From assembly GCA_051530055.1 (NCBI GenBank), contig JBMGUZ010000041.1, positions 1-23,748 on the forward strand: DNA of 23,748 bases, given 5' to 3'. Position numbers and translations under genes: made by a program. This stretch comes from Neoechinorhynchus agilis. Its lineage: Eukaryota; Animalia; Acanthocephala. The notes under the pieces are model-generated. The model did no database searches and had not been told where the DNA came from. It worked only from the letters and a program-made list of their open reading frames with translations. Below are positions 62 through 23,748 of the stretch, in pieces; the first letter of the stretch is position 1, and each line of letters opens with the position of its first letter.

Positions 62-406
62 TTACGCGCCACCCCATTGGGCCGTTGTTATCACGCTTGC
101 CGTGTTGCCCCGTTGAATAGCCACACTCAAGCGTTGGATGAGGTAGTTCCTTTGTCTGTGATCTCCGCTGGCTTTTATGAGTAGTCGGCCTATCTCCGCG
201 CAAAATTTCTTTGCCGAAACTCCAAATGCCCCATTTGTCTCCACACCGAAAGGAAGGAATAGGTGAGTCTTTTCCAGCTCAGCGTATTTCGCTCTCTCCT
301 CCCCGACCGCCGTCGCAGCCCCTCCCGGTCCCGATATTGCATCACTTCGGCTGGAGGGTGCTAACGAATCGACGCATGTGGCGTCCCAGATAAGGCATTT
401 TCCTCC
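62..406 (-). mobile_element. 3' fragment of a CRE-type non-LTR retrotransposon (C-terminal part of the restriction-like endonuclease), inserted into the Gypsy integrase
   Basis: The last ~115 aa of ORF 62..1204 read GKCLIWDATCVDSLAPS...ERAKYAEL...FLPFGVETNGAFG...QRLSVAIQRGNTASV, matching the C-terminal REL region of CRE-clade elements. The switch from integrase (RSLLCTST) to CRE sequence is at ~406/407. Confidence 0.85.
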
Positions 407-1204
407 AGTAGAGGTACAAAGCAGCGATCTTAGATTTCCCAGAGCTTGTAACAACGCTTCGTCCCACTTTGTTATTGGCCAAGACTTGTCTTCCAATGTT
501 AGGAGGATCGTCTTCCAAAGGGTACCATTGAGACGTTCACATTGTCCATTGGCATGAGGACGATAGGAGGTTGTGTGACTTGAGCATATCCTTAGCGAAG
601 TTAGCCAATCGCGTAATGTTCTAGAGGTGAAGCAGGAGCCGCGATCAGAGTGGATAAAGGAGGGACATCCAAAGAGCGAGAATATTCGTTCGAGGCATAA
701 TTTGACGCTGTCAGCCGAGGTGTCCTTACAAGCGAATGCTATAGGGTAACGAGAAAACTCGTCTATTGCCACGAATAAATATTTGTATCCGTGCGTTGAC
801 GTTGGTAAGGGTCCTTTGAAGTCCACGGAGATTCTCTCCCAGGGCGCCATCGCTTTTATCAATTTCAAGCTCGATTGAGGTTTGAAAAAGCGAGGTTTCA
901 AGTGGCAGCAAATGGGACATTCTGCAGTGATCTTTCGCACGTCATTCAAATCGAACGGTAAGTTTTGCTGTCGAATGAAATGGAGTAGTCTAGTGTTTCC
1001 GGGATGGCCGAGAGACCGATGAACGTCTTTTAGTTTATTGAACGATATGTTCATTGACGCACATACATTTCTCGATAGTGCATCCGCACTCAAATTGTCT
1101 TTACCGGGTCGGAATCGGATACTATAGGAGAACATTGATAACTGTAGCTTCCACCGCAAAATCTTGTCGTTCCGGATCTTCCCGGCGTGTCGTTGATTTA
1201 GCAC
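407..1204 (-). pseudogene. Gypsy pol: end of RNase H plus integrase (HHCC zinc finger and DDE core)
   Basis: KIRNDKILRWKLQL...RPGKDNLSADALSR (RNase H end); HRSLGH...CPIC; SVDFKGP, HSDRGSCF, ANGQCERLNG. Confidence 0.93.
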
Positions 1205-2490
1205 AGCGATTAGCGGTTGGATTTTGCTGGAATAATTAGAAATCCACCGACTGTAATACGCAAAAAAATCCCAATAAACGCCTTAAGGTCGCTTTGTTCG
1301 TTGAAGTTCGGATTTCGTCCAAGGGTTTAAGCCGCGAACGATCTGGTTTCAGCTGTCCTGCGCCGATATCGTATCCTAATACTCGAATGGTTTCTTTGCA
1401 AAACGTACTCTTTGCTTCGTTCAACTTCAATTCGGCAAGCGATGTGACTTTTTTAAAACGGTTTAGATTGACATTGTGTTCTTCACGGGTTTTGTCACAT
1501 ACAATAACGTCGCCCAAATAGGCAAAGGTAGCTTTTAATTCGTTCCCATCGATTACGTGGTTCATGAATCTCTGAAAGGCGGCCACTCCATTTGTCACTC
1601 CCATGGGGATTCGCGTAAAGCGATAGAATTTTCCGCAAGCTTCGAAAGTTGTAAAATTGCGCTCTTTGATCTGTATAGGTACCTGATGGTAAGCGTCTTT
1701 TAGGTCTAAGTGGCTGAGATATCTATATTTTGTGATTTTATTTTGCAAGAGAGCTTAATTTGGGAAGCGGATAAGCGTCCAAGTACGTGATCCTATTAAT
1801 AGTCTGCGAAAAGTCAACGACAAGTCGCTTTTTCCCATTTTCGCGCTTGACGACAATAACTTGGGCTCGCCAAGGTGAGTTCGCGAGTTCTATGACTTGA
1901 TCTCGCAATAGTCGATTGATTTCTGCACGGATAAACGTTGAATTTTCTTCATTGTGCCTTCTCGACTTGGTTACGATCGGAGTCGTGTCTTCGCTCAAAT
2001 TCTCAAAGAGTAGGGGTGAATAGTGAGACTGCTTGGTATTGACCGATGCGATTCGCAGATCTAAACTTTCCATAGTTCCTCCCGGTTTTATCCGCATCTC
2101 AAAATGTAAGCCAATAAAAGGTATTCCAAGGATAACATCGGAACATAAATCGTTTAATAGAAACAATTCCACGTTCAAACAGTTTCTTTGTTCATACTGT
2201 ATGTCCACCAGGCATTTTCCCAACACTTTTCGAGACGAATTACCCGCGGCCATCAGGACGTTGAGATTAACAGGCGTGTAACGTATTCGTAGTTTTCGTG
2301 TCGCGCTCATATCGATGAAGTTTAAAACACTTCCAGTATCCACTAAAGCCGACATTTGACAATTTGAAACATTTATTGAGATTTGAACACGTTTGTCGGA
2401 CTGAGCTTCGAGATTGCTGGTCGCAAGAAAAATCGAAGATACGCTTTTATTCGTCAATTTTCCTTTAGTCTTACAAACCCTAGCAAATGG
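1205..2490 (-). pseudogene. Gypsy pol: aspartic protease and reverse transcriptase, frameshifted
   Basis: ALVDTGSVLNFI and SPWRAQVIVVKR...RLVVDFSQTIN...DAYPLP lie in ORF 1738..2535; LDLKDAYHQV...FAYLGDV lies in ORF 1236..1748. Single-base frameshifts occur near 1744 and in the A7 run at 1262-1268. Confidence 0.92.
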
Positions 2491-3311
2491 CCCTGCTGGG
2501 AGCAGCAGTAACAGACGGCCTCTTTCGCCGGGCACTGAAATCGAGGATTCCGTTTAAGTCCACAGAAATAGCACAGGTTAGTCCCGTTTCGTGACATTTT
2601 CGTTATTTTCGATGGCTGGGTATTTACGGTTGCGTCACATTCAACGGTTTCCAAAATGGAATCCGAGCTATAACCAGGATTGATGAAGCCGACAGAACCA
2701 ACCTCGGGTTTATGGTTGAAATGCGCCAAACTTTCCACCGCATTCTGCATAGATTTTGAGATCGCGATGGCTCTGTTAAGATCCCAATGCTCGTTCTCCA
2801 AAAGTCTTTGGCGGGTAGAGTCAGATCTCAGTCCAGCAATGAACGAATCACGAAGGAAATCGTCCCGAGCTTCCTCAGCGGACACATTTTTGAAATGACA
2901 ATTTTTAGCCAACGATCGGAGTGATTGAATAAATTGGTCGATATCTTCGTTGTCTGCCTGTTTTCGTATGGACAAGAAATACCTGGCCATGACTTCGTTG
3001 CTTTCTTTTAGGAATAAACGATCTAAAGTTTTCAGAGTATCATCTAGAGAGGTCTCCTCTTCGACGAATTCGTAAACGTCCGCGCTTATGTTCAGAAGTA
3101 GAGTGTCGATGGAAACACCTCCATCGATTGATTTCAGAAGGTGTTGGAAATTCCGTCTCCATAACTTGTACTTCTTCAACGCTCCCTCCTCGTGAGGCAA
3201 TACGTTGAATCGTTCAAGACGCCATGAAGGCTTCGAGACGTTGAGCTCGCTCGGTAGCGACAAATTATGGATCACCTTCTTGGAATCCATATCGGAATTG
3301 TTAGTCGTCAT
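2454..3311 (-). pseudogene. Gypsy gag (capsid-like region plus two CCHC-type zinc knuckles)
   Basis: 285-aa ORF with RDSFIAGL and CYFCGLKRNPRFQCPAKEAVCYCCSQQGH (Mag-type double knuckle, first His replaced by Asn). A 1-nt deletion near 2487 separates it from FARVCK in the protease frame. Confidence 0.88.
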
Positions 3312-3481: not shown

Positions 3482-4494
3482 TTTTTTCGCCCCATCTCTA
3501 TCCTTCCCGCGCTCTCCAAGTCTTTGAAAAATGCTTTAAAGCGAGCCTCCTCCCCAATCTCCTAGCTAAACAATTTGGATTTCGCCCTAAATATTCAGCC
3601 ACAGATGTTCTACTCTGCATTTATGACGCGCTCATCTAAAATGTTGATTAACATCACAAGCTTATCGAAGCCTGTTCCGATTTCGGACTGGATGCTTGGA
3701 AAATTCGATGGCTCTTTTCATATTTGACAAGTCGAGCACAATACATAAAATGCAACGCCGCCACCTCAAAGACCATGCTACTATCAAAAGGTGTCCCAAA
3801 AGGAGCCATCCTTTCCCCACTCCTCTTCAACATCTTTCTTAACAGACTCAAACTCCTCTCGAGCGAAACCCGTCTATTCCTGTATGCCGACGACATAACC
3901 CTAGTCACCATTGTACCGGCAAACAAGTCACTGCCTGTTACCCTGGCTGAAATCTCAAACATTTCCGATTTCTGCGACGGCATGAAGTTATCGATCAATT
4001 TCTCGAAATCGTCTGCGATGATCCCGGCTCTTAAAGGAAACCCGTCTTTCTACGCACAACCATATCTACCGAATGCGACAAAACGCGTCGCTAACCTTCG
4101 AATTTTGGGCCTCCAGTTCCAACAAGACCTAAAATGGCATTCCCACGTCTCTTTAGCCATCAGAAAAAATAATTTCAAGACCTACCTCTTAAAACGCCTT
4201 CGTCGTTTTGGGGTGATCCCATCAGATCTAGCGAAATTTTATCTAGCTTACATTTACGCAAGCTAGAAGTTTTCCATAAGAGAGCTGTCAAAATTTGCTC
4301 CGGTGATTTTCTGTCCATGAAAGACACTCCTAACAATTTTCACAAAGCAGAGCAAACGCCTGATGTCCCATCCGCCGCGACTCGTTCCCCATATTACCCA
4401 CCCTCATAGAACGCGCAAGCCATCCTCCTTCAAACCGCGCAAATCGCGAACCAACACCTTCATTCCTTTTTTCCTGCTGCTCAGTCATATTTAA
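3482..4494 (+). mobile_element. Degenerate CR1/L2-group LINE ORF2 fragment (RT and C-terminal region)
   Basis: Across frameshifts and stops: RPISILPALSK, QFGFRPKYSATDVLL, GVPKGAILSPLLFNIF, LYADDITL, LRILGLQFQQDLKWHSHV, HKRAVKI and RTNTFIPFF, the typical ORF2 end. Confidence 0.85.
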
Positions 4495-9488: not shown

Positions 9489-9758
9489 TTACGTTATGGA
9501 GCATCCATCCTGATTCCCTCCATACTGACCAGGTGAGGAGTATGTTTGGCAACCATATCGCGGATAATTGTAACCTTGATAGTATCCATAGCTTGGATAT
9601 CTCTGTCCATGGTGCTGTCCATGGTGCCCATGGTGTCCATGGTGCCCATGTTGTCCACGGTAGCCACCATAATACATTCCAGGGTATACAGCGGGTAAGG
9701 CAGAAAAGTTGCCAGAAGAGCTTCTACGCATGACTTCAACAGGATTTCTAGTTTTTCT
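9489..9758 (-). CDS. Gly/Tyr/His-rich low-complexity peptide, probably the last exon of an unidentified gene
   Basis: Frame ...NPVEVMRRSSSG...YYGGYRGQHGHHGHHGHHGQHHGQRYPSYGYYQGYNYPRYGC...GCSIT*. Acceptor-like AG dinucleotides lie at 9759-9760 and 9748-9749. AATAAA lies ~35 nt past the stop (9450-9455). Confidence 0.6.
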   Translation of the reverse strand, partial: RKTRNPVEVMRRSSSGNFSALPAVYPGMYYGGYRGQHGHHGHHGHHGQHHGQRYPSYGYYQGYNYPRYGCQTYSSPGQYGGNQDGCSIT

Positions 9759-10993: not shown

Positions 10994-12493
10994 ATGGCTG
11001 AAATAAAGCAGGAGAAGGTAAGTCTGGAGGCTGACAGAGCGAACAATCCTGATATGAATGTGCCGGTATCAATACATTCAAGTAGCCACATTGAATTGGC
11101 AGTTCGTCGTAATGTGAAGACGAACACGTCTGCATGCCATTCGAGTCGATATGTTTCATGTAATCGTGATTGATCAATTGATCTCCAAATCGATCATTCA
11201 TGGAATAAACCTGATATTCGTCAAACGGGAACTCAGACGTCCAATGGAATTGGTGGATTTATTCCGTTTCCCGTTGGTATTCCGGTCCCCATTCCAATGT
11301 GCATGTTTCGATACTTTACACCGCGTCCAATCCCTTTGCCGATTCCATTGCCGATTCCGGTCTTTCTACCTGTTGGAGAAAAAAGATTTAAAGAACTAAT
11401 CGATCGATCGGTGAAAAATGAACCAACTGAAGAGCAAAGTGAGCACTTTAGTGAAATAGAAAAAGAAGAACAATGTACAGTAGAAACTCGACGGTTACCA
11501 AACCAGTTAGAAATGCCTCCTTCGGTCGACGAATTTTTCATTTCGACCGATAAAGAGCACAACTTAACACTGGGCGCTCAGCTGTTTCAGAGTTTTGTAC
11601 AAACCTACCGCCGTAAGGATCCGTCTATTCCAAAAACATTCCCTGAGTTCAGTGTTGAACAGCTAAGTAAATCTTTGCTTAGATTCGCTATCCAACTGAA
11701 AAAATCCGACGGAACACTGTGCTCCCCAGAAGTTCTCTATTTCGTATCTGTTAGTGTTCACTATTTTCTGAGATCGATCGGAAGGGAGGAAGACATCCTG
11801 TACGATCCTGAATTCAACGCTTTTTCACAATTCGTTTTTGATCGAATCCAACATTGCACTGTTCAAATCGATCCTCGAGACAATCGAGTATATTCTCGTA
11901 TTAATGAAGAAATCTTATGGAAATCGTATATGCTTGGCGCTCATTCACCCAGAACATTACTGAATACTTTGTTTTACATTAACATCAAATGCTTTCTTAT
12001 TCTTAACATTCAGGATCACTACGACCTCACTTTCGCTAATGTCCGCCGTCATGTAAAACGATGGGTCGTACCAATCGATAGCGAGGATCAAAAATTAAAT
12101 GAAAGTGAAAGCAGTCATAATGAAAATCAGCACTATAAGGAAGTGAGCAGGCAGCGGTTCATTCGCTATTATCCAACGCGCGACCCGGATCTTATCTTTG
12201 AACAAATAGAAGACCGATCCTTTGCCATGCATTGCGCATGCCGCATTTTCGAATTCTACATCTCCAAGTGCCCAGTTTCTTTACGGCATTCCGAACATTG
12301 CATCTATTTAGAACCCGAAAAGTCCGTTATGCCAGAATCACCGATTTGGTTCACCAGCAAAGCCGTTTCAGAGATGACACTAACCAAAATGATGCTCCAA
12401 ACGAGACTAATCAAGGAAATGTCGGAACTCGAAATCGCTTTTGCTAGTCAAAGCGGAAGCAGTACAGCAGCAGGACAGACAACAGCCGCCTAA
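10994..12493 (+). CDS. ZMYM: ZMYM2/3/4-Woc family protein (Pro-rich segment and DUF3504 domain); 5' structure uncertain (in-frame TGA at 11171)
   Basis: IPFPVGIPVPIPM...PIPLPIPVFLP, LGAHSPRTLLNTLFYINIKCF...DHYDLTFANV and CRIFEFYISKCPVSLR...IYLEPEKSVMPESPIWF match the ZMYM/Woc C-terminus. Upstream ATG at 10994 (MAEIKQEK) is in the same frame. Confidence 0.85.
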
Positions 12494-12547: not shown

Positions 12548-13030
12548 ACATTTAAAGAATTGTTTTGGAAAAAAACGAAGATCAGCATCAAATTAGAGTG
12601 ACGTAAGATCAATGCGATTTGCACACTCGAAAATGTTACCATACAACATAAACATTCCATTTGACAAGGCAAAAAATATTATCACAACCATCTCACACCA
12701 AAGATACCAGCCGACAACAAAATAAGCAAAATGAGAGAAATTTTAATAATAAAAAAAGTCGTATAATTCAATTTTTGAAACTTTAGAATTCTAAAAAATG
12801 CACATAAGAAAAAATTACGTCGATAATTCCGAAGACCATCGCGAAGATCGCATTTCATCATAGTAAATTAAAGGATAAAATATCACAAAAGGGAGAATTC
12901 GCCCGAGATTTCAATCGCTAAGAATTCAATTACAAATTAAGAACCGAAATCTCGATATCATCATTCGTTCACTAGAACGAAAGTAAGATTTTTGAGAAAT
13001 TAATCATCTCATCTCAAAGAATTCTAAAGA

Positions 13031-13098
13031 ATGCTCAGAAGAAAAACTTTCGTCAGTAAATCCGAAGACCATCGCGAAGATCGCATTTCATCATAGCA
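13031..13098 (-). ncRNA. SNORD35: SNORD35/snR73-like box C/D snoRNA (representative intact copy)
   Basis: Minus strand: C box ATGATGA (13094-13088), guide TCGCGATGGTCT (13077-13066), D' CGGA (13064-13061), C' CTGACGA (13056-13050), D CTGA (13038-13035), short TGC/GCA terminal stem. The guide pairs with 28S AGACCGUCGUGA (2 G-U), and D'+5 falls on the first C (yeast Cm2959). Confidence 0.82.
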
Positions 13099-16000
13099 AA
13101 TTAAAGGATCAAATAGCAAAAAAAGAGAATTCGCTAGAGATTTCAATCGCTAAGAATTCGAGTACAAATTAACATCAGAAATCTCGATATCATCATTCGT
13201 TCAGTAGAACGAAAGTTAGATTTTTGAGAAATTCATCACCGCACCTCAAAGAATTCTAAAGAATGCTCACAAGAAAATCGTTCGTCAATAAATACGAAGA
13301 CCATCGCGAAGATCGCATTTCATCATAGCAAATTAAAGGACAAAAAAAGCACAAAAAGGAGAATTCGCACGACATTTCAATCGCCAAGAATTCAAGTACA
13401 AATTAAGATAATAAATCTCGATATTATCAATCGTTCACTAGATCGAAAGTTAGATTTTTGAGAAATTCATCATCTCATCTCAAAGAATTCTAAAGAATGC
13501 TCACAAGAAAAACTTTGGTCAATAAATCCGAAGACCATCGCGAAGATCGAATTTCATCATAAAAAATTAAAGGATAAAAAAGCACAAAAAGAAGAATTCG
13601 CACGACATTTCAATCGCCAAGAATTCAAGCACAAATTAAGATCATAAATCTCGATATCATCATTCGTTCACTAGAACGAAAGTTAGATTTTTGAGAAATT
13701 ACTCATCTCATCTCCAAGAATTCTAAAGAATGCTCAGAAGCAAAACTTTCGTCAATAAATCCGAAGACCATCGCGAAGATCGCATTTCATCACTGCAAAT
13801 TAAAGGATAAAATATCACAAAAGGGAGAATTAACCCGAGAATTTAATCGCTAAGAATTCAAGTACGAATTAACATCAGAAATCTCGATATCATCATTCGT
13901 TCAGTAGAACGAAAGTTAGATTTTTGAGAAATTCATCATCTCACCTCAAAGAATTCTAAAGAATGCTCACAAGAAAATCGTTCGTCAATAAATAAGACCA
14001 TCGCGAAGATCGCATTTAATCATACCAGATTAAAGGATAAAATAGCACAAAAGTTAGAAGTCGCCCGAAACTTCAATCGCTAACAACTCTATTAAAAATT
14101 AAGATCAGAAATCTCGATATCATCATTCGTTCAGTAGAACGAAAGTTAGATTTTTGAGAAATTCATCATATCATCTAAAGAATTCTAAAGAATGCTCAGA
14201 AGCAAAACTTTCGTCAATAAATCCGAAGACCATCGCGAAGATCGCATTTCATCATAGCAAATTGAAGGATAAAATAGCAAAAAAAGAGAATTCGCCCGAG
14301 ATTTCAACCGCTAAGAATTCCAGTACAAATTAAGATTAGAAATCTCGACATCATCATTCGTTCAGTGGAACGGAAGTTAGATTTTTGAGAAATTCATCAT
14401 CTCATGTAAAGAATTTCAAGGAATGCTCAGAAGCAAAACTTTGGTCAATAAATCCGAAGACCATCGCGAAGATCGAATTTAATCACAGCAAATTAAAGGA
14501 TAAAATATCACAAAATAGAGAATTTGCCCGAGATTTCAATCGCTAAGAATTCAAGTACAAATGAAGATCAGAAATCTCGATATCATCATTCGTTCAGTAG
14601 AACGAAAGTTAGATTTTTGAGAAATTCATCATCTCATCCCAAAGAATTCTAAAGAATGCTCACAAGAAAAACTTTCGTCAATAAATCCGAAGACCATCGC
14701 GAAGATCGCATTTCATCATAGCAAATTAAAGGATAAAATAGCACAAAAAGAAGAATTCGCCCGACATTTCAATCGCCAAGAATTCAAGTACAAATTAAGA
14801 TCAGAAATCTCGATATCATCATTCGTTCAGTAGAACGAAAGTTAGATTTTTGAGAAATTCATCATCTCATCTAAAGAATTCTAAAGAATGCTCAGAAGCA
14901 AAACTTTCGTCAATAAATCCGAAGACCATCGCGAAGATCGCATTTCATCACAGCAAATTAAAGGATAAAATATCACAAAATAGAGAATTTGCCCGAGATT
15001 TCAATCGCTAAGAATTCAAGTACAAATGAAGATCAGAAATCTCGATATCATCATACGTTCAGTAGAACGAAAGTAAGATTTTTGAGAAATTCATCATCTC
15101 ATCTCAAAGAATTCTAAAGAATGCTCACAAGAAAAACTTTCGTCAATAAATCCGAAGACCATCGCGAAGATCGCATTTCATCATAGCAAATTAAAGGATA
15201 AAAAAGCACAAAAAGGAGAATTCGCACGACATTTCAATCGCCAAGAATTCAAGTACAAATTAAGATCATAAATCTCGATATTATCAATCGTTCACTAGAT
15301 CGAAAGTTAGATTTTTGAGAAATTCATCATCTCATCCCAAAGAATTCTAAAGAATGCTCACAAGAAAAACTTTCGTCAATAAATCCGAAGACCATCGCGA
15401 AGATCGCATTTCATCATAGCATATTAAAGGATAAAAAGGCACAAAAAGGAGAATTCGCACGACATTTCAATCGCCAAGAATTCAAGTACAAATTAAGATC
15501 AGAAATCTCGATATTATCAATCGTTCACTAGAACGAAAGTTAGATTTTTGAGAAATTACTCATCTCATCTCCAAGAATTCTAAAGAATGCTCAGAAGCAA
15601 AACTTTCGTCAATAAATCCGAAGACCATCGCGAAGATCGCATTTCACCACTGCAAATTAAAGGATAAAATATCACAAAAGGGAGAATTAACCCGAGAATT
15701 TAATCGCTAACAACTCTACTAAAAATTAAGATCAGAAATCTCGATATCTTCATTCGTTCTGTAGAATGAAAGTTTGATTTTTGAGAAATTCATCATCTCA
15801 TCTAAAGAATTCTCACAAGAAAATCGTTCGTCAATTAATCCGAAGACCATCGCGAAGATCGCATTTCATCACTGCAAATTAAAGTATAAAATATCACAAA
15901 ATAGAGAATTTGCCCGAGATTTCAATCGCTAAGAATTCAAGTACAAATGAAGATCAGAAATCTCGATATAATCATTCGTTCAGTTGAACGAAAGTACGAT

Positions 16001-19000
16001 TTTTGAGAAATTCATCATCTCAAAGAATTCTAAAGAATGATCACAAGAAAAACTTTCGTCAATAAATCCGAAGACCATCGCGAAGATCGCATTTCATCAT
16101 AGCAAATTAAAGGATAAAAAAACACAAAAAGGAGAATTCGCCCGACATTTCAATCAAAAAAAATTCAAGTACAAATTAAGGTCAGAAATCTCGATATCAT
16201 CATTTGTTCAGTAGAACGAAAGTAAGATTTTTGAGAAATTACTCATCTCATCTCCAAGAATTCTAAAGAATGATCACAAGAAAAACTTTCGTCAATAAAT
16301 CCGAAGACCATCGTGAAGATCGCATTTCATCATAGCAAATTAAAGGATAAAAAAGCACAAAAAGGAGAATTCGCACGACATTTCAATCCCCAAGAATTCA
16401 AGTACAAATTAAGATCATAAATCTCGATATTATCAATCGTTCACTAGATCGAAAGTAAGATTTTTGAGAAATTCATCATCTCATCCCAAAGAATTCGAAA
16501 GAATGCTCACAAGAAAAACTTTCGTCAATAAATCCGAAGACCATCGCGAAGATCGCATTTCATCATAGCACATTAAAGGATAAAAAAACACAAAAAGGAG
16601 AATTCGCCCGACATTTCAATCGCACAGAATTCAAATACAAATTAAGATCAGAAATCTCGATATCATCATTCGTTCAGTAGAACGAAAGTAAGATTTTTGA
16701 GAAATTAATCATCTCATCTCAAAGAATTCAAAAGAATGCTAACGAGAAAAACTTTCGTCAATAAATCCGAAGACCATCGCGAAGATCGCATTTAATCACT
16801 GCAAGTTAAAGGATAAAATATCACAAAAGGGAGAATTAACCCGAGATTTTAATCGCTAAGAATTCAAGTACGAATTAACATCAGAAATTTCGACATCATC
16901 ATTCGTTCAGTAGAACGAAAGTTAGATTTTTGAGAAATTCATCATCTCATCTCAAAGAATTCTAAAGAATGCTCATAAGAAAAACTTTCGTCAAAAAACC
17001 CGAAGACCATCGTGAAGATGGCATTTCATCCTAGCAAATTAAAGGATAAAAAAGAACAAAAAAGAGAATTCGCCCGACATTTCAATCGCCAAGAATTCAA
17101 GTACAAATTAAGATGAGAAATCTCGATATCATCATTCGTTCAGTAGAACGGAAGTTAGATTTTTGAGAAATTCATCATCTCATGTAAAGAATTCTAAAGA
17201 ATGCTCAGAAGAAAAACTTTGGTCAATAAATCCGAAGACCATCGCGAAGATCGCATTTCATCATAGCAAATTAAAGGATAAAATAGCAAAAAAAGAGAAT
17301 TCGCTAGAGATTTCAATCGCTAAGAATTCCAGTACAAATTACCATCATAAATCTCGATATCATCATACGTTCAGTAGAACGAAAGTAAGATTTTTGAGAA
17401 ATTCATCATCTCATCTAAAGAATTCTAAAGAATGCTCAGAAGCAAAACTTTCGTCAGTAAATCCGAAGACCATCGCGAAGATCGCATTTCATCATAGCAA
17501 ATTAAAGGATAAAATAGCAAAAAAAGAGAATTCGCTAGAGATTTCAATCGCTAAGAATTCCAGTACAAATTACCATCATAAATCTCGATATCATCATTCG
17601 TTCAGTAGAACGAAAGTTAGATTTTTGAGAAATTCATCATCTCACCTCAAAGAATTCTAAAGAATGCTCACAAGAAAATCGTTCGTCAATAAATAAGAAG
17701 ACCATCGCGAAGATCGCATTTAATCATACCAGATTAAAGGATAAAATAGCACAAAAGTTAGAAGTCGCCCGAAACTTCAATCGCTAACAACTTCATTAAA
17801 AATTAAGATCAGAAATCTCGATATCATCATTCGTTCAGCAGAACGAAAGTTAGATTTTTGAGAAATTCATCATATCATCTAAAGAATTCTAAAGAATGCT
17901 CAGAAGCAAAACTTTCGTCAATAAATCCGAAGACCATCGCGAAGATCGCATTTCATCATAGCAAATTGAAGGATAAAATAGCAAAAAAAGAGAATTCGCC
18001 CGAGATTTCAACCGCTAAGAATTCCAGTACAAATTAAGATTAGAAATCTCGACATCATCATTCGTTCAGTGGAACGGAAGTTAGATTTTTGAGAAATTCA
18101 TCATCTCATGTAAAGAATTTCAAGGAATGCTCAGAAGCAAAACTTTGGTCAATAAATCCGAAGACCATCGCGAAGATCGAATTTAATCACAGCAAATTAA
18201 AAGAAAAATATCACAAAATAGAGAATTTGCCCGAGATTTCAATCGCTAAGAATTCAAGTACAAATGAAGATCAGAAATCTCGATATAATCATACGTTCAG
18301 TAGAACGAAAGTAAGATTTTTAAGAAATTCATCATCTCATCTCAAAGAATTCTAAAGAATGCTCACAAGAAAAACTTTCGTCAATAAATCCGAAGACCAT
18401 CGCGAAGATCGCATTCCATCATAGCAAATTAAAGGATAAAATAGCAAAAAAAGAGAATTCGCTAGAGATTTCAATCGCTAAGAATTCGAGTACAAATTAA
18501 CATCAGAAATCTCGATATCATCATTCGTTCAGTAGAACGAAAGTTAAATTTTTGAGAAATTAATCATCGCACCTCAAAGAATTCTAAAGAATGCTCACAA
18601 GAAAATCGTTCGTCAATAAATAAGAAGACCATCGCGAAGATCGCATTTAATCATACCAGATTAAAGGATAAAATAGCACAAAAGTTAGAATTCGCCCGAC
18701 ATTTCAATCACAAAAAATTCAAGTACAAATTAAGGTCAGAAATCTCGATATCATCATTTGTTCAGTACAACGAAAGTAAGATTTTTTAGAAATTAATCAT
18801 CTCATCTCAAAGAATTCTAAAGAATGCTAACAAGAAAAACTTTCGTCAATAAATCCGAAGACCATCGCGAAGATCGCATTTCATCATAGCAAATTAAAGG
18901 ATAAAAAAACACAAAAAGAAGAATTCGCACGACATTTCAATCGCCAAGAATTCAAGTACAAATTAAGATCATAAATCTCGATATCATCAATCGTTCACTA

Positions 19001-21519
19001 GAACGAAAGTTAGATTTTTGAGAAATTACTCATCTCATCTCCAAGAATTCTAAAGAATGCTCAGAAGCAAAACTTTCGTCAATAAATCCGAAGACCATCG
19101 CGAAGATCGCATTTCATCACGGCAAATTAAAGGATAAAATATCACAAAAGGGAGAATTAACCCGAGAATTTAATCGCTAAGAATTCAAGTACGAATTAAC
19201 ATCAGAAATCTCGATATCATCATTCGTTCAGTAGAACGAAAGTTAGATTTTTGAGAAATTCATCATCGCACCTCAAAGAATTCTAAAGAATGCTCACAAG
19301 AAAATCGTTCGTCAATAAATACGAAGACCATCGCGAAGATCGCATTTAATCACACCAGATTAAAGGATAAAATAGCACGAAAGTTAGAAGTCGCCCGAAA
19401 CTTCAATCGCTAACAACTCTATTAAAAATTAAGATCAGAAATCTCGATATCATCATTCGTTCAGTAGAACGAAAGTTAGATTTTTGAGAAATTCATCATC
19501 GCACCTCAAAGAATTCTAAAGAATGCTCACAAGAAAATCGTTCGTCAATAAATACGAAGACCATCGCGAAGATCGCATTTAATCATACCAGATTAAAGGA
19601 TAAAATAGCACAAAAGGTAGAAGTCGCCCGAAACTTCAATCGCTAACAACTCTATTAAAAATTAAGATCAGAAATCTCGATATCATCATTCGTTCAGTAG
19701 AACGAAAGTTAGATCTTTGAGAAATTCATCATATCATCTAAAGAATTCTAAAGAATGCTCAGAAGCAAAACTTTCGTCAATAAATCCGAAGACCATCGCG
19801 AAGATCGCATTTCATCATAGCAAATTGAAGGATAAAATAGCAAAAAAAGAGAATTCGCCCGAGATTTCAACCGCTAAGAATTCCAGTACAAATTAAGATT
19901 AGAAATCTCGACATCATCATTCGTTCAGTGGAACGGAAGTTAGATTTTTGAGAAATTCATCATCTCATGTAAAGAATTTCAAGGAATGTACAGAAGCAAA
20001 ACTTTGGCCAATAAATCCGAAGACCATCGCGAAGATCGAATTTAATCACAGCAAATTAAAGGATAAAATATCACAAAATAGAGAATTTGCCCGAGATTGC
20101 AATCGCTAAGAATTCAAGTACAAATGAAGATCAGAAATCTCGATATAATCATACGTTCAGTAGAACGAAAGTAAGATTTTTAAGAAATTCATCATCTCAT
20201 CTCAAAGAATTCTAAAGAATGCTCACAAGAAAAACTTTCGTCGATAAATCCGAAGACCATCGCGAAGATCGCATTCCATCATAGCAAATTAAAGGATAAA
20301 AAAGAACAAAAAAGAGAATTCGCACGACATTTCAATCGCCAAGAATTCAAGTACAAATTAAGATCATAAATCTCGATATTATCAATCGTTCACTAGATCG
20401 AAAGTTAGATTTTTGAGAAATTCATCATCTCATCCCAAACAATTCTAAAGAATGCTCACAAGAAAAACTTTCGTCGATAAATCCGAAGACCATCGCGAAG
20501 ATCGCATTTCATCATAGCATATTAAAGGATAAAAAGGCACAAAAAGGAGAATTCGCACGACATTTCAATCGCCAAGAATTCAAGTACAAATTAAGATCAG
20601 AAATCTCGATATTATCAATCGTTCACTAGAACGAAAGTTAGATTTTTGAGAAATTACTCATCTCATCTCCAAGAATTCTAAAGAATGCTCAGAAGCAAAA
20701 CTTTCGTCAATAAATCCGAAGACCATCGCGAAGATCGCATTTCACCACTGCAAATTAAAGGATAAAATATCACAAAAGGGAGAATTAACCCGAGAATTTA
20801 ATCGCTAACAACTCTACTAAAAATTAAGATCAGAAATCTCGATATCTTCATTCGTTCTGTAGAATGAAAGTTTGATTTTTGAGAAATTCATCATCTCATC
20901 TAAAGAATTCAAAGAATGCTCACAAGAAAAACTTTCGTCAATAAATCCGAAGACCATCGCGAAGATCGCATTTCATCACTGCAAATTAAAGGATAAAATA
21001 TCACAAAATAGAGAATTCGCCCGAGATTTCAATCGCTAAGAATTCAAGTACAAATTAAGATCAGAAATCTCGATATCATCATTCGTTCAGTAGAACGAAA
21101 GTAAGATTTTTGAGAAATTATCATCTCATCTCAAAGAATTCTAAAGAATGCTCACAAGAAAAACTTTCGTCAATAAATCCGAAGACCATCGCGAAGATCG
21201 CATTTCATCATAGCAAATTAAAGGATAAAATAGCACAAAAAAGAGAATTCGCCCGAGATTTCAATCGCTAAGAATTCAAGTACAAATTAAGATCAGAAAT
21301 CTCGATATCATCATTCGTTCAGTAGAACGAAAGTAAGATTTTTGAGAAATTAATCATCTCATCTCAAAGAATTCTAAAGAATGCTCACAAGAAAAACTTT
21401 CGTCAATAAATCCGAAGACCATCGCGAAGATCGCATTTCATCATAGCAAATTAAAGGATAAAAAAGCACAAAAAGGAGAATTCGCCCGACATTTCAATCG
21501 CCAAGAATTCAAGTACAAA

Positions 21520-21600
21520 TTAAGATCAGAAATCTCGATATCATCATTCGTTCAGTAGAACGAAAGTTAGATTTTTGAGAAATTCATCATCTCATCTCAA
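21520..21600 (-). ncRNA. SNORD59: SNORD59/snR54-like box C/D snoRNA (representative intact copy)
   Basis: Minus strand: C box ATGATGA (21590-21584), guide CTAACTTTCGTTCT (21570-21557), D' CTGA (21555-21552), C' ATGATGA (21547-21541), D CTGA (21529-21526), TTGAGA/TCTTAA terminal stem, 81 nt. The guide is the exact complement of 18S AGAACGAAAGUUAG, and D'+5 falls on the A of yeast Am974. Confidence 0.88.
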
Positions 21601-23748
21601 AGAATTCTAAAGAATGCTCACAAGAAAAACTTTCGTCAATAAATCCGAAGACCATCGCGAAGATCGCATTTCATCATAGCAAATTAAAGGATAAAAAAGC
21701 ACAAAAAGGAGAATTCGCACGACATTTCAATCGCCAAGAATTCAAGTACAAATTAAGATCAGAAATCTCGATATCATCATTCGTTCAGTAGAACGAAAGT
21801 TAGATTTTTGAGAAATTAATCATCTCATCTCAAAGAATTCTAAAGAATGCTCACAAGAAAAACTTCGTCAATAAATCCGAAGACCATCGCGAAGATCGCA
21901 TTTCATCATAGCAAATTAAAGGATAAAATAGCAAAAAAAGAGAATTCGCCAGAGATTTCAATCGCTAAGAATTCCAGTACAAATTAAGATCATAAATCTC
22001 GATATCATCATTCGTTCAGTAGAACGAAAGTTAGATTTTTGAGAAATTCATCATCTCATCTCAAAGAATTCTAAAGAATGCTAACAAGAAAAACTTTCGT
22101 CAATAAATCCGAAGACCATCGCGAAGATAGCATTTCATCATAGCAAATTAAAGGATAAAAAAGCACAAAAAAGAGAATTCGCACGACATTTCAATCGCCA
22201 AGAATTCAAGTACAAATTAAGATCATAAATCTCGATATCATCATTCGTTCAGTAGAACGAAAGTTAGATTTTTGAGAAATTCATCATCTCATCTAAAGAA
22301 TTCTAAAGAATGCTCAGAAGAAAAACTTTCGTCAATAAATCCGAAGACCATCGCGAAGATCGCATTTCATCATAGCAAATTAAAGGATAAAATAGCAAAA
22401 AAAGAGAATTCGCTAGAGATTTCAATCGCTAAGAATTCCAGTACAAATTACCATCATAAATCTCGATATCATCATACGTTCAGTAGAACGAAAGTAAGAT
22501 TTTTGAGAAATTCATCATCTCATCTCAAAGAATTCTAAAGAATGCTCACAAGAAAAACTTTCGTCAATAAATCCGAAGACCATCGCGAAGATCGCATTTC
22601 ATCATAGCAAATTAAAGGATAAAAAAGCAAAAAAGAGAATTCGCTAGAGATTTCAATCGCTAAGAATTCCAGTACAAATTACCATCATAAATCTCGATAT
22701 CATCATACGTTCAGTAGAACGAAAGTAAGATTTTTGAGAAATTCATCATCTCATCTCAAAGAATTCTAAAGAATGCTCACAAGAAAATCGTTCGTCAATA
22801 AACACGAAGACCATCGCGAAGATCGCATTTCATCATAGCAAATTAAAGGATAAAAAAGCACAAAAAGGAGAATTCGCACGACATTTCAATCGCCAAGAAT
22901 TCAAGTACAAATTAAGATAATAAATCTCGATATTATCAATCGTTCACTAGATCGAAAGTTAGATTTTTGAGAAATTCATCATCTCATCTCAAAGAATTCT
23001 AAAGAATGCTACCAAGAAAAACTTTCGTCAATAAATCCGAAGACCATCGCGAAGATAGCATTTCATCATAGAAAATTAAAGGATAAAAAAGCACAAAAAG
23101 AAGAATTCGCACGACATTTCAATCGCCAAGAATTCAAGAACAAATTAAGATCATGAATCTCGATATCATCATTCGTTCACTAGAACAAAAGTTAGATTTT
23201 TGAGAAATTACTCATCTCATCTCCAAGAATTCAAAAGAATGCTCAGAAGCAAAACTTTCGTCAATAAATCCGAATACCATCGCGAAGATCGCATTTCATC
23301 ACTGCAAATTAAAGGATAAAATATCACAAAAGGGAGAATTAACCCGAGATTTTAATCGCTAAGAATTCAAGTACGAATTAACATCAGAAATCTCGATATC
23401 ATCATTCGTTCAGTAGAACGAAAGTTAGATTTTTGAGAAATTCATCATCGCACCTCAAAGAATTCTAAAGAATGCTCACAAGAAAATCGTTCGTCAATAA
23501 ATAAGACCATCGCGAAGATCGCATTTAATCATACCAGATTAAAGGATAAAATAGCACAAAAGGCAGAAGTCGCCCGAAATTTCAATCGCTAACAACTCTA
23601 TTAAAAATTAAGATAAGAAATTTCGACATCATCATTCGTTCAGTAGAACGAAAGTTAGATTTTTGAGAAATTCATCATCTCATCTCAAAGAATTCTAAAG
23701 AATGCTCATAAGAAAAACTTTCGTCAAAAATCCGAAGACCATCGCGAA

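Follow-up and report, generated by a model that had tools for sequence, protein, structure and literature searches.

The question raised by this locus is whether a 68-base segment of the minus strand, at 13031..13098, is a working gene for a guide RNA of the U35/snR73 type or a remnant of one carried in satellite-like DNA. The segment lies in a window of 23,748 nucleotides from Neoechinorhynchus agilis, by which we mean the whole stretch of DNA that was analysed, and it is one copy among many in a tandem array. We consider it probable that it is an intact U35/snR73-type guide gene making up half of an amplified 233-bp unit with two snoRNAs, and that the copies with canonical boxes are the likely producers of the RNA. 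Few pairs of guide and target in the rRNA modification of eukaryotes are as conserved as that of U35, and its occurrence in a new animal is thus to be expected. The value of the locus lies in its setting, an acanthocephalan genome in which rRNA guides of a classic kind are found dozens of times over in arrays that resemble satellites.

Organization of the tandem array

The array occupies 12785..23748 on the minus strand and comprises 47 units of about 233 bp (TRF period 233, 47.3 copies, 90% matches). It runs past the right end of the window, and 47 units is a lower bound. Read along the minus strand, each unit consists of a first snoRNA (snoRNA A) and a second (snoRNA B), the former followed by a spacer of about 75 nt and the latter by one of about 25 nt, and the segment at 13031..13098 is the snoRNA B of one such unit. 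The 47 units were cut out and aligned, and all copy counts given below refer to this set. Their mean pairwise identity was 0.89. A strict higher-order repeat, sought across the 47 units, was not found; block duplications were seen in the alignment at shifts of 8, 22-24 and 41 units, and the most degenerate unit is the one at the edge of the array. When the 20-mer covering the guide and the D′ box of snoRNA B was searched with up to 2 mismatches, 45 occurrences were obtained, all of them on the minus strand and spaced by about 233 bp, where chance would be expected to give none. Pyrimidine tracts ending in AG lie 3′ of both snoRNAs.

Box C/D anatomy of the cassette

The preliminary description had claimed a box C/D architecture for the minus strand of this segment, and the sequence reads as described. 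From its 5′ end the order is UGCU, AUGAUGA, a 23-nt stretch ending in UUCGCGAUGGUCUU, CGGA, UUUAC, UGACGA, AAGUUUUUCUU, CUGA and GCA, and every box of this copy is canonical. The C box AUGAUGA (13088..13094, minus strand), of the RUGAUGA class, stands near the 5′ end, and the D box CUGA (13035..13038, minus strand) near the 3′ end. Between them lies the 13-nt antisense element UUCGCGAUGGUCU (13066..13078, minus strand), upstream of the D′ box CGGA (13061..13064, minus strand) and separated from it by a single U. This D′ box is non-consensus at position 2 and keeps the GA, as does the C′ box UGACGA (13050..13055, minus strand), which is followed by the 11-nt second guide of snoRNA B, the D guide AAGUUUUUCUU (13039..13049, minus strand).

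Thus, 23 nt separate C from D′, 5 nt separate D′ from C′ and 11 nt separate C′ from D, and the whole is closed by a terminal stem, UGCU/AGCA, for which the minimum-energy and centroid folds both give 3-4 bp. In the remainder of the RNA the predicted structure was unremarkable (z = -0.85), and low internal structure is what is expected of a box C/D RNA. The order and the spacing of the boxes fit the box C/D snoRNA class.

The 28S rRNA target of the D′ guide

In order to place the guide on rRNA, three proxies were used, namely the 28S sequences of three metagenome contigs (L001, L042 and L012), which belong to other eukaryotes and not to the worm. The rDNA was fetched from the metagenome contigs with a 28S pattern, and Rfam identified complete 18S, 5.8S and 28S genes in each of the three. 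The best 28S partner of the D′ guide was AGACCGUCGUGAG in all three proxies, with a duplex of 13 bp, 3 of which are G.U pairs. The energy of the duplex was -21.1 kcal/mol for the worm guide, compared to -23.6 kcal/mol for the SNORD35 consensus guide. The 28S pairing proposed earlier is therefore upheld as a 13-bp duplex on the 28S of three other eukaryotes. A difference at the target stretch in the worm 28S appears unlikely, because this stretch does not differ among the three unrelated proxies and hardly differs in E. coli.

Two copies in which an A changes one of the G-U pairs into a Watson-Crick pair had also been reported, and both are present. One, with the guide variant UCACGAUGG (16300..16319, minus strand), belongs to a unit whose D box is GUGA and whose 3′ stem is damaged, and the other (16999..17018, minus strand) to a unit with AGGAUGA as C box, CGGG as D′ box and AUGA as D box. 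The variant reads CCATCGTGA on the plus strand, and it converts the G.U pair at guide position 11 into A-U. This change is more likely a sign of decay than an improvement, because it is a CpG transition and both copies are found in box-damaged units.

The fifth nucleotide upstream of the D′ box, G13069, pairs with the first C of AGACCGUCGUGAG in the proxy 28S, and in each of the three proxies the A-loop UGUUC has its G 37 nt 5′ of this cytosine. The same interval of 37 is found between Gm2922 and Cm2959 (snR73) in yeast, between Gm4469 and Cm4506 (U35A/B) in human, and between Gm3255 and Cm3292 (CD23) in Dictyostelium, the site being assigned to snR73, U35A/B, AtU35 and CD23 (PMC8817022); the equivalence holds also for AtU35 (PMC8583080). 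Since the interval is the same in the proxies, yeast, human and Dictyostelium, the cytosine selected by the guide is exactly the conserved Cm2959 (yeast)/Cm4506 (human) site. When a copy of E. coli 23S was used for comparison, the target aligned with the second A of AGAACG, 37 nt after the G of the A-loop. Numbering from Um2552/G2553, we take this position to be A2590, five nucleotides after U2585 and at the foot of helix 93. To speak of the peptidyl-transferase-centre helix, as had been done before, was fair, with A2590 adjoining U2585 of the centre.

Taken alone, the complementarity is weak evidence under the lenient scoring used, by which 18 of 200 shuffled guides equalled the score of the guide somewhere in the rRNA, and 4 of 200 did so for the A variant. 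The U35/snR73 case rests on additive coincidences, which are the known site, the identity with the consensus, the geometry of the boxes and a partner snoRNA that is itself strongly guided.

Relationship to SNORD35/snR73

Rfam searched at gathering thresholds gave no family match in the whole window, and permissive thresholds returned sub-threshold C/D families only. The SNORD35 covariance model, with a cut-off of 36, scored the copy at 13031..13098 at 14.3 bits (E = 0.62, searching 91 nt). The A-variant copies scored higher, namely 19.8 bits (E = 0.014) for the one at 16300..16319 and 18.8 bits for the one at 16999..17018. A significant Rfam SNORD35 score, which the preliminary description had chosen as its own test, was thus reached neither at this copy nor at the best one of the array. 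Membership in SNORD35/snR73 is claimed here by target and guide identity only, and not in the sense of Rfam.

The guide together with its D′ box, UCGCGAUGGUCUUCGGAU, is identical to the SNORD35 consensus UCACGAUGGUCUUCaGAU at 16 of 18 positions, and the A variant at 17; the consensus stretch of the SNORD35 model that aligned with the worm UCGCGAUGGUCUUCGGAU was CUCACGAUGGUCUUCaGAug. The box at the D′ place of the SNORD35 consensus is CaGA. To judge from the consensus, which has both of them, a guide U that wobbles on a 28S G and a D′ box of the CNGA type are family traits. The family of SNORD35, snR73, AtU35 and CD23 (RF00211, clan CL00056) consists of box C/D RNAs with a guide in the 5′ half upstream of D′, as here, and its vertebrate, yeast, Arabidopsis and Dictyostelium members select Cm4506, Cm2959, Cm2949 and Cm3292, which correspond to the 28S cytosine of the worm guide. 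Common to the worm cassette and SNORD35/snR73 are the guide core ACGAUGGUCUU, the U.G wobble and the CNGA D′ box.

The worm copy differs from SNORD35 in one more G.U pair (CGCG where SNORD35 has CACG) and in its length, which is about 68 nt compared to 88 for the SNORD35 model. Vertebrate U35 genes are single-copy and lie within introns of genes for ribosomal proteins, which in human are RPL13A and RPS11, whereas the worm cassette is part of a tandem array. Some of the worm copies carry a putative second guide of the U38/snR61 type. A like layout is found in sn3071 of C. elegans (RF01166), in which the consensus guide UCACGACGGUCUU is followed by CCGA and is directed at the same 28S stretch; unlike the worm guide, it pairs without the U.G wobble. 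The sn3071 model scored 17.6 bits against the worm sequence, with a cut-off of 40.

The partner snoRNA and the second guide

In the same unit, snoRNA A is located at 13167..13243 on the minus strand and resembles snR54/U59, with 34.4 bits for Rfam RF00473 and an 18S guide of 14-15 bp. At the snoRNA A of other units RF00473 scored up to 45.2 bits, and the cut-off is 50. The guide matches 18S AGAACGAAAGUUAG, and none of 200 shuffles was as good. With this highly significant 18S guide, the snoRNA nature extends to the entire unit. For the D guide of snoRNA A, CGAGAUUUC, no rRNA target better than those of shuffles was found.

Two possible hairpins were observed in this part of the unit. In the first of them, the D guide of snoRNA A, CGAGAUUUC, is complementary over 9 nt to GAAAUCUCG, a spacer sequence some 33 nt further downstream (for example, 13182-13174 and 13140-13132 on the minus strand), and the minimum-energy and centroid folds of a unit both contain this hairpin. 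Upkeep of its 9 bp across the array was not evident: only 11 of the 47 units keep the CGAGAUUUC/GAAAUCUCG pairing free of mismatches, and one unit (23700-23471) is doubly compensated. The 3′ end of the 18S guide, UUCGUUC, can fold on GAACGAA, a sequence that includes the GA of the D′ box of snoRNA A itself, to give a 7-bp hairpin with the loop UACU, which would compete with rRNA binding.

The D guide of snoRNA B exists in three forms. In 13 of the 47 copies, most of which have CUGA as D box, it is AAGUUUUGCUU, which is also the D guide of the Rfam DdR13 consensus, and AAGUUUUGCUU-CUGA forms 10 bp with 28S AAGC[A]GAACU (L001), although 31 of 200 shuffles score as well. Dictyostelium CD13 guides Am1370, which is equivalent to Am1133 of yeast (snR61) and Am1858 of human (U38) (PMC8817022). 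CD13 is probably DdR13 under a new name. The copy at 13031..13098 carries a U variant of the D guide, with a mismatch at position 4 of the U38/snR61-type pairing. For the majority form, the search for an rRNA target gave none better than shuffles.

State of the copies

The D′ guide is intact in 44 of 47 copies, 42 of them with the major form and 2 with the A variant. The boxes are more variable. CGGA at D′ was found in 38 copies and UGACGA at C′ also in 38, and the C box is a canonical RUGAUGA in 32. At the D box GUGA prevails, with 24 copies, compared to 15 that have CUGA and 8 with other sequences, a feature that the preliminary description had not mentioned. Only 11 copies have canonical C and D boxes together, and 9 copies, including the one at 13031..13098, have all boxes canonical. 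As for snoRNA A, every element is canonical in 12 of 47 units, and both snoRNAs are intact in 4, one of which is the unit of the present cassette (u13261_13030).

In the geometry of the kink-turn, C1 of the D box pairs with G6 of the C box. A GUGA D box should therefore break this pair and would be predicted to weaken snoRNP assembly. A change of the C-box G6 to U (AUGAUUA; for example, in the units at 19754-19522 and 17895-17663) tends to accompany the change of D-box C1 to G, with 6 units carrying U6/G1 and 3 carrying U6/C1. The U6/G1 combination would put U.G in place of the G-C of stem II, and these counts are too few to speak of covariation.

Conservation of the guide and decay of the boxes

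A window of 16 nt in the guide is the most conserved part of the unit, with 5 non-consensus cells out of 752 (column-permutation P = 0.008); only 3 such cells are found in ATCTTCGCGATGGTCT, which is colder than any other window. On a tree of the units the guide required 5 parsimony events compared to 21 expected, or to 24 after correction of the expectation for base composition (P about 3e-6). GC content was ruled out as the reason for the cold guide, G and C columns elsewhere in the unit being the most mutable. The conserved guide corresponds to columns 188-204 of the alignment of the unit (12785-23748). In comparison, the C, D′, C′ and D boxes of snoRNA B showed 2.3 events per site, and the spacers 1.4.

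Purifying selection on each copy should be negligible in an array so redundant, and change of the boxes at or above the spacer rate is not what such selection on a working gene predicts. Coldness does not always mark a guide. The pre-guide of snoRNA A, UUUCUCAAAAAU, is as cold as the U35-type guide, with 3 events in 12 nt, and the D guide of snoRNA A is cold also; an rRNA partner was sought for both of them and none was found. The real 18S guide of snoRNA A evolves near the neutral rate. Possible causes of the pattern are tolerated box variants, selection on the whole array under concerted evolution, uneven gene conversion, and an antisense role that is independent of the boxes. A more specific combination, to which we give little credence, is either that the machinery tolerates GUGA and AUGAUUA and needs a huge gene dose of a peptidyl-transferase-centre guide weakened by wobble pairs, or that the transcripts act as antisense RNAs or chaperones on pre-28S without a canonical snoRNP. 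The frozen guide beside decaying boxes is in effect a natural experiment on selection in redundant RNA genes that evolve in concert.

The state of the boxes could also mean that the array is a dead satellite, derived from a unit of two snoRNAs and giving no working snoRNP, in which case methylation, if any, would depend on another U35 gene. Such an origin would be consistent with the 38 of 47 copies of snoRNA B that have at least one non-canonical box, with the rate at which the boxes change, with the block duplications, which are typical of satellites, and with the position of the array in repeat-rich DNA beside a retrotransposon pol gene and a DUF3504 ORF. We nevertheless regard it as rather unlikely, considering that a GC-rich 16-mer containing CpG has stayed nearly invariant (5 events vs about 24) while its surroundings diverge by 11%, and that nine fully canonical copies and four units with both snoRNAs intact persist. 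Chance likeness, by which an AT-rich satellite with box-like motifs happens to include a short match to rRNA, is very improbable. All covariance-model scores are indeed sub-threshold, and the shuffle test on complementarity alone is only marginal. However, chance would have to supply four boxes in correct order and spacing, an identity of 16/18 with the SNORD35 consensus, a second snoRNA whose guide 0 of 200 shuffles could match, and a +5 site that falls on a known methylation site, the last with a chance of about 1 in 100, over and above the 9% seen with shuffles.

The 16-mer might instead be kept for a reason other than guiding, for example, as a protein-binding box, as a cold spot of gene conversion, or for an antisense or chaperone role independent of the boxes. 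A protein-binding box is known from alpha satellite, namely the CENP-B box. That the guide is frozen even where the boxes are damaged would agree with such a reason, as would the redundancy of more than 47 copies, which should leave guiding with negligible selection per copy, and the behaviour of snoRNA A, whose pre-guide and D guide are cold with no rRNA partner found and whose genuine 18S guide is near neutral. We still hold this to be quite improbable, as nothing observed speaks positively for DNA binding or for a chaperone function. The cold window is almost the same as the stretch paired with 28S and agrees with the SNORD35 consensus, so that guide function is the simplest explanation of its conservation.

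Proposed expression and function

For the reading that we prefer, that of an intact guide gene in an amplified unit, the following route from array to modified rRNA is proposed. The array would probably be read as a long precursor and trimmed to individual snoRNAs, by analogy with the clusters of plants, trypanosomatids and Euglena. Two other modes of transcription were considered and rejected. Judged from the sequence alone, transcription of each unit by Pol III would meet T5 runs within snoRNA B and within the spacer, and an arrangement of one snoRNA per mini-intron of a host gene was discarded upon reading of the units, most copies having no GT donor and the distances being too short.

The canonical copies would yield a box C/D RNA of about 68 nt, and about a fifth of the copies, which keep all boxes, would be the likely producers; the remaining copies may be decaying passengers of unequal crossing-over. 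In box C/D RNAs generally, the C/D kink-turn assembles Snu13/15.5K, Nop56, Nop58 and fibrillarin, and the C and D boxes of the worm RNA are predicted to form such a kink-turn and to recruit the same proteins. The 13-nt element upstream of D′ would then base-pair to helix 93 of 28S domain V, on its 5′ strand, and fibrillarin would 2′-O-methylate the C opposite the fifth guide nucleotide, a cytosine that corresponds to Cm2959 of yeast and Cm4506 of human.

Comparison with known snoRNA arrays

Tandem snoRNA clusters have been described in trypanosomatids and Euglena, and polycistronic clusters in plants and Dictyostelium (PMC6562600, PMC2784804, PMC8817022). The worm array can be likened to these, in which several snoRNAs that guide rRNA modification are combined per unit in a head-to-tail or polycistronic order. 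Those hosts are protists or plants, whereas the worm is an animal, and the worm array differs further in its very short unit, its very large number of copies and the damaged boxes in the majority of them.

Among animals, SNORD115/116 and SNORD113/114 are named as the only two known mammalian snoRNA gene clusters (PMC2766290). As in the worm, these are long tandem arrays of box C/D snoRNAs; however, the mammalian snoRNAs are orphans without rRNA targets, and the worm snoRNAs carry classic rRNA guides. In the mammalian arrays each snoRNA has its own intron in a long, imprinted host transcript and the unit measures about 1-2 kb, whereas that of the worm is 233 bp long and has no evident exons. 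Trypanosomatids and Euglena have been described with a similar layout, as have mammals, in which the snoRNAs are orphans. For an animal the arrangement is unusual. The transcriptome paper on N. agilis mentions neither snoRNAs nor satellites. For those who annotate genomes, the locus indicates that "satellites" of this kind are gene arrays.

Sequence to the left of the array

The left flank of the array is rich in repeats. An LTR-retrotransposon pol gene with integrase, reverse transcriptase and aspartyl protease was identified on the minus strand at 62-3311, and a reverse-transcriptase fragment on the plus strand at 3724-4266. An intact ORF of 398 aa with DUF3504 and QRICH1 domains (11297-12493, plus strand) ends about 300 bp from the array. 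In addition, 9603-9661 contains a 9/18-bp tandem repeat (CCATGGTGC-like), which lies within an ORF for a low-complexity peptide rich in His, Gly and Tyr.
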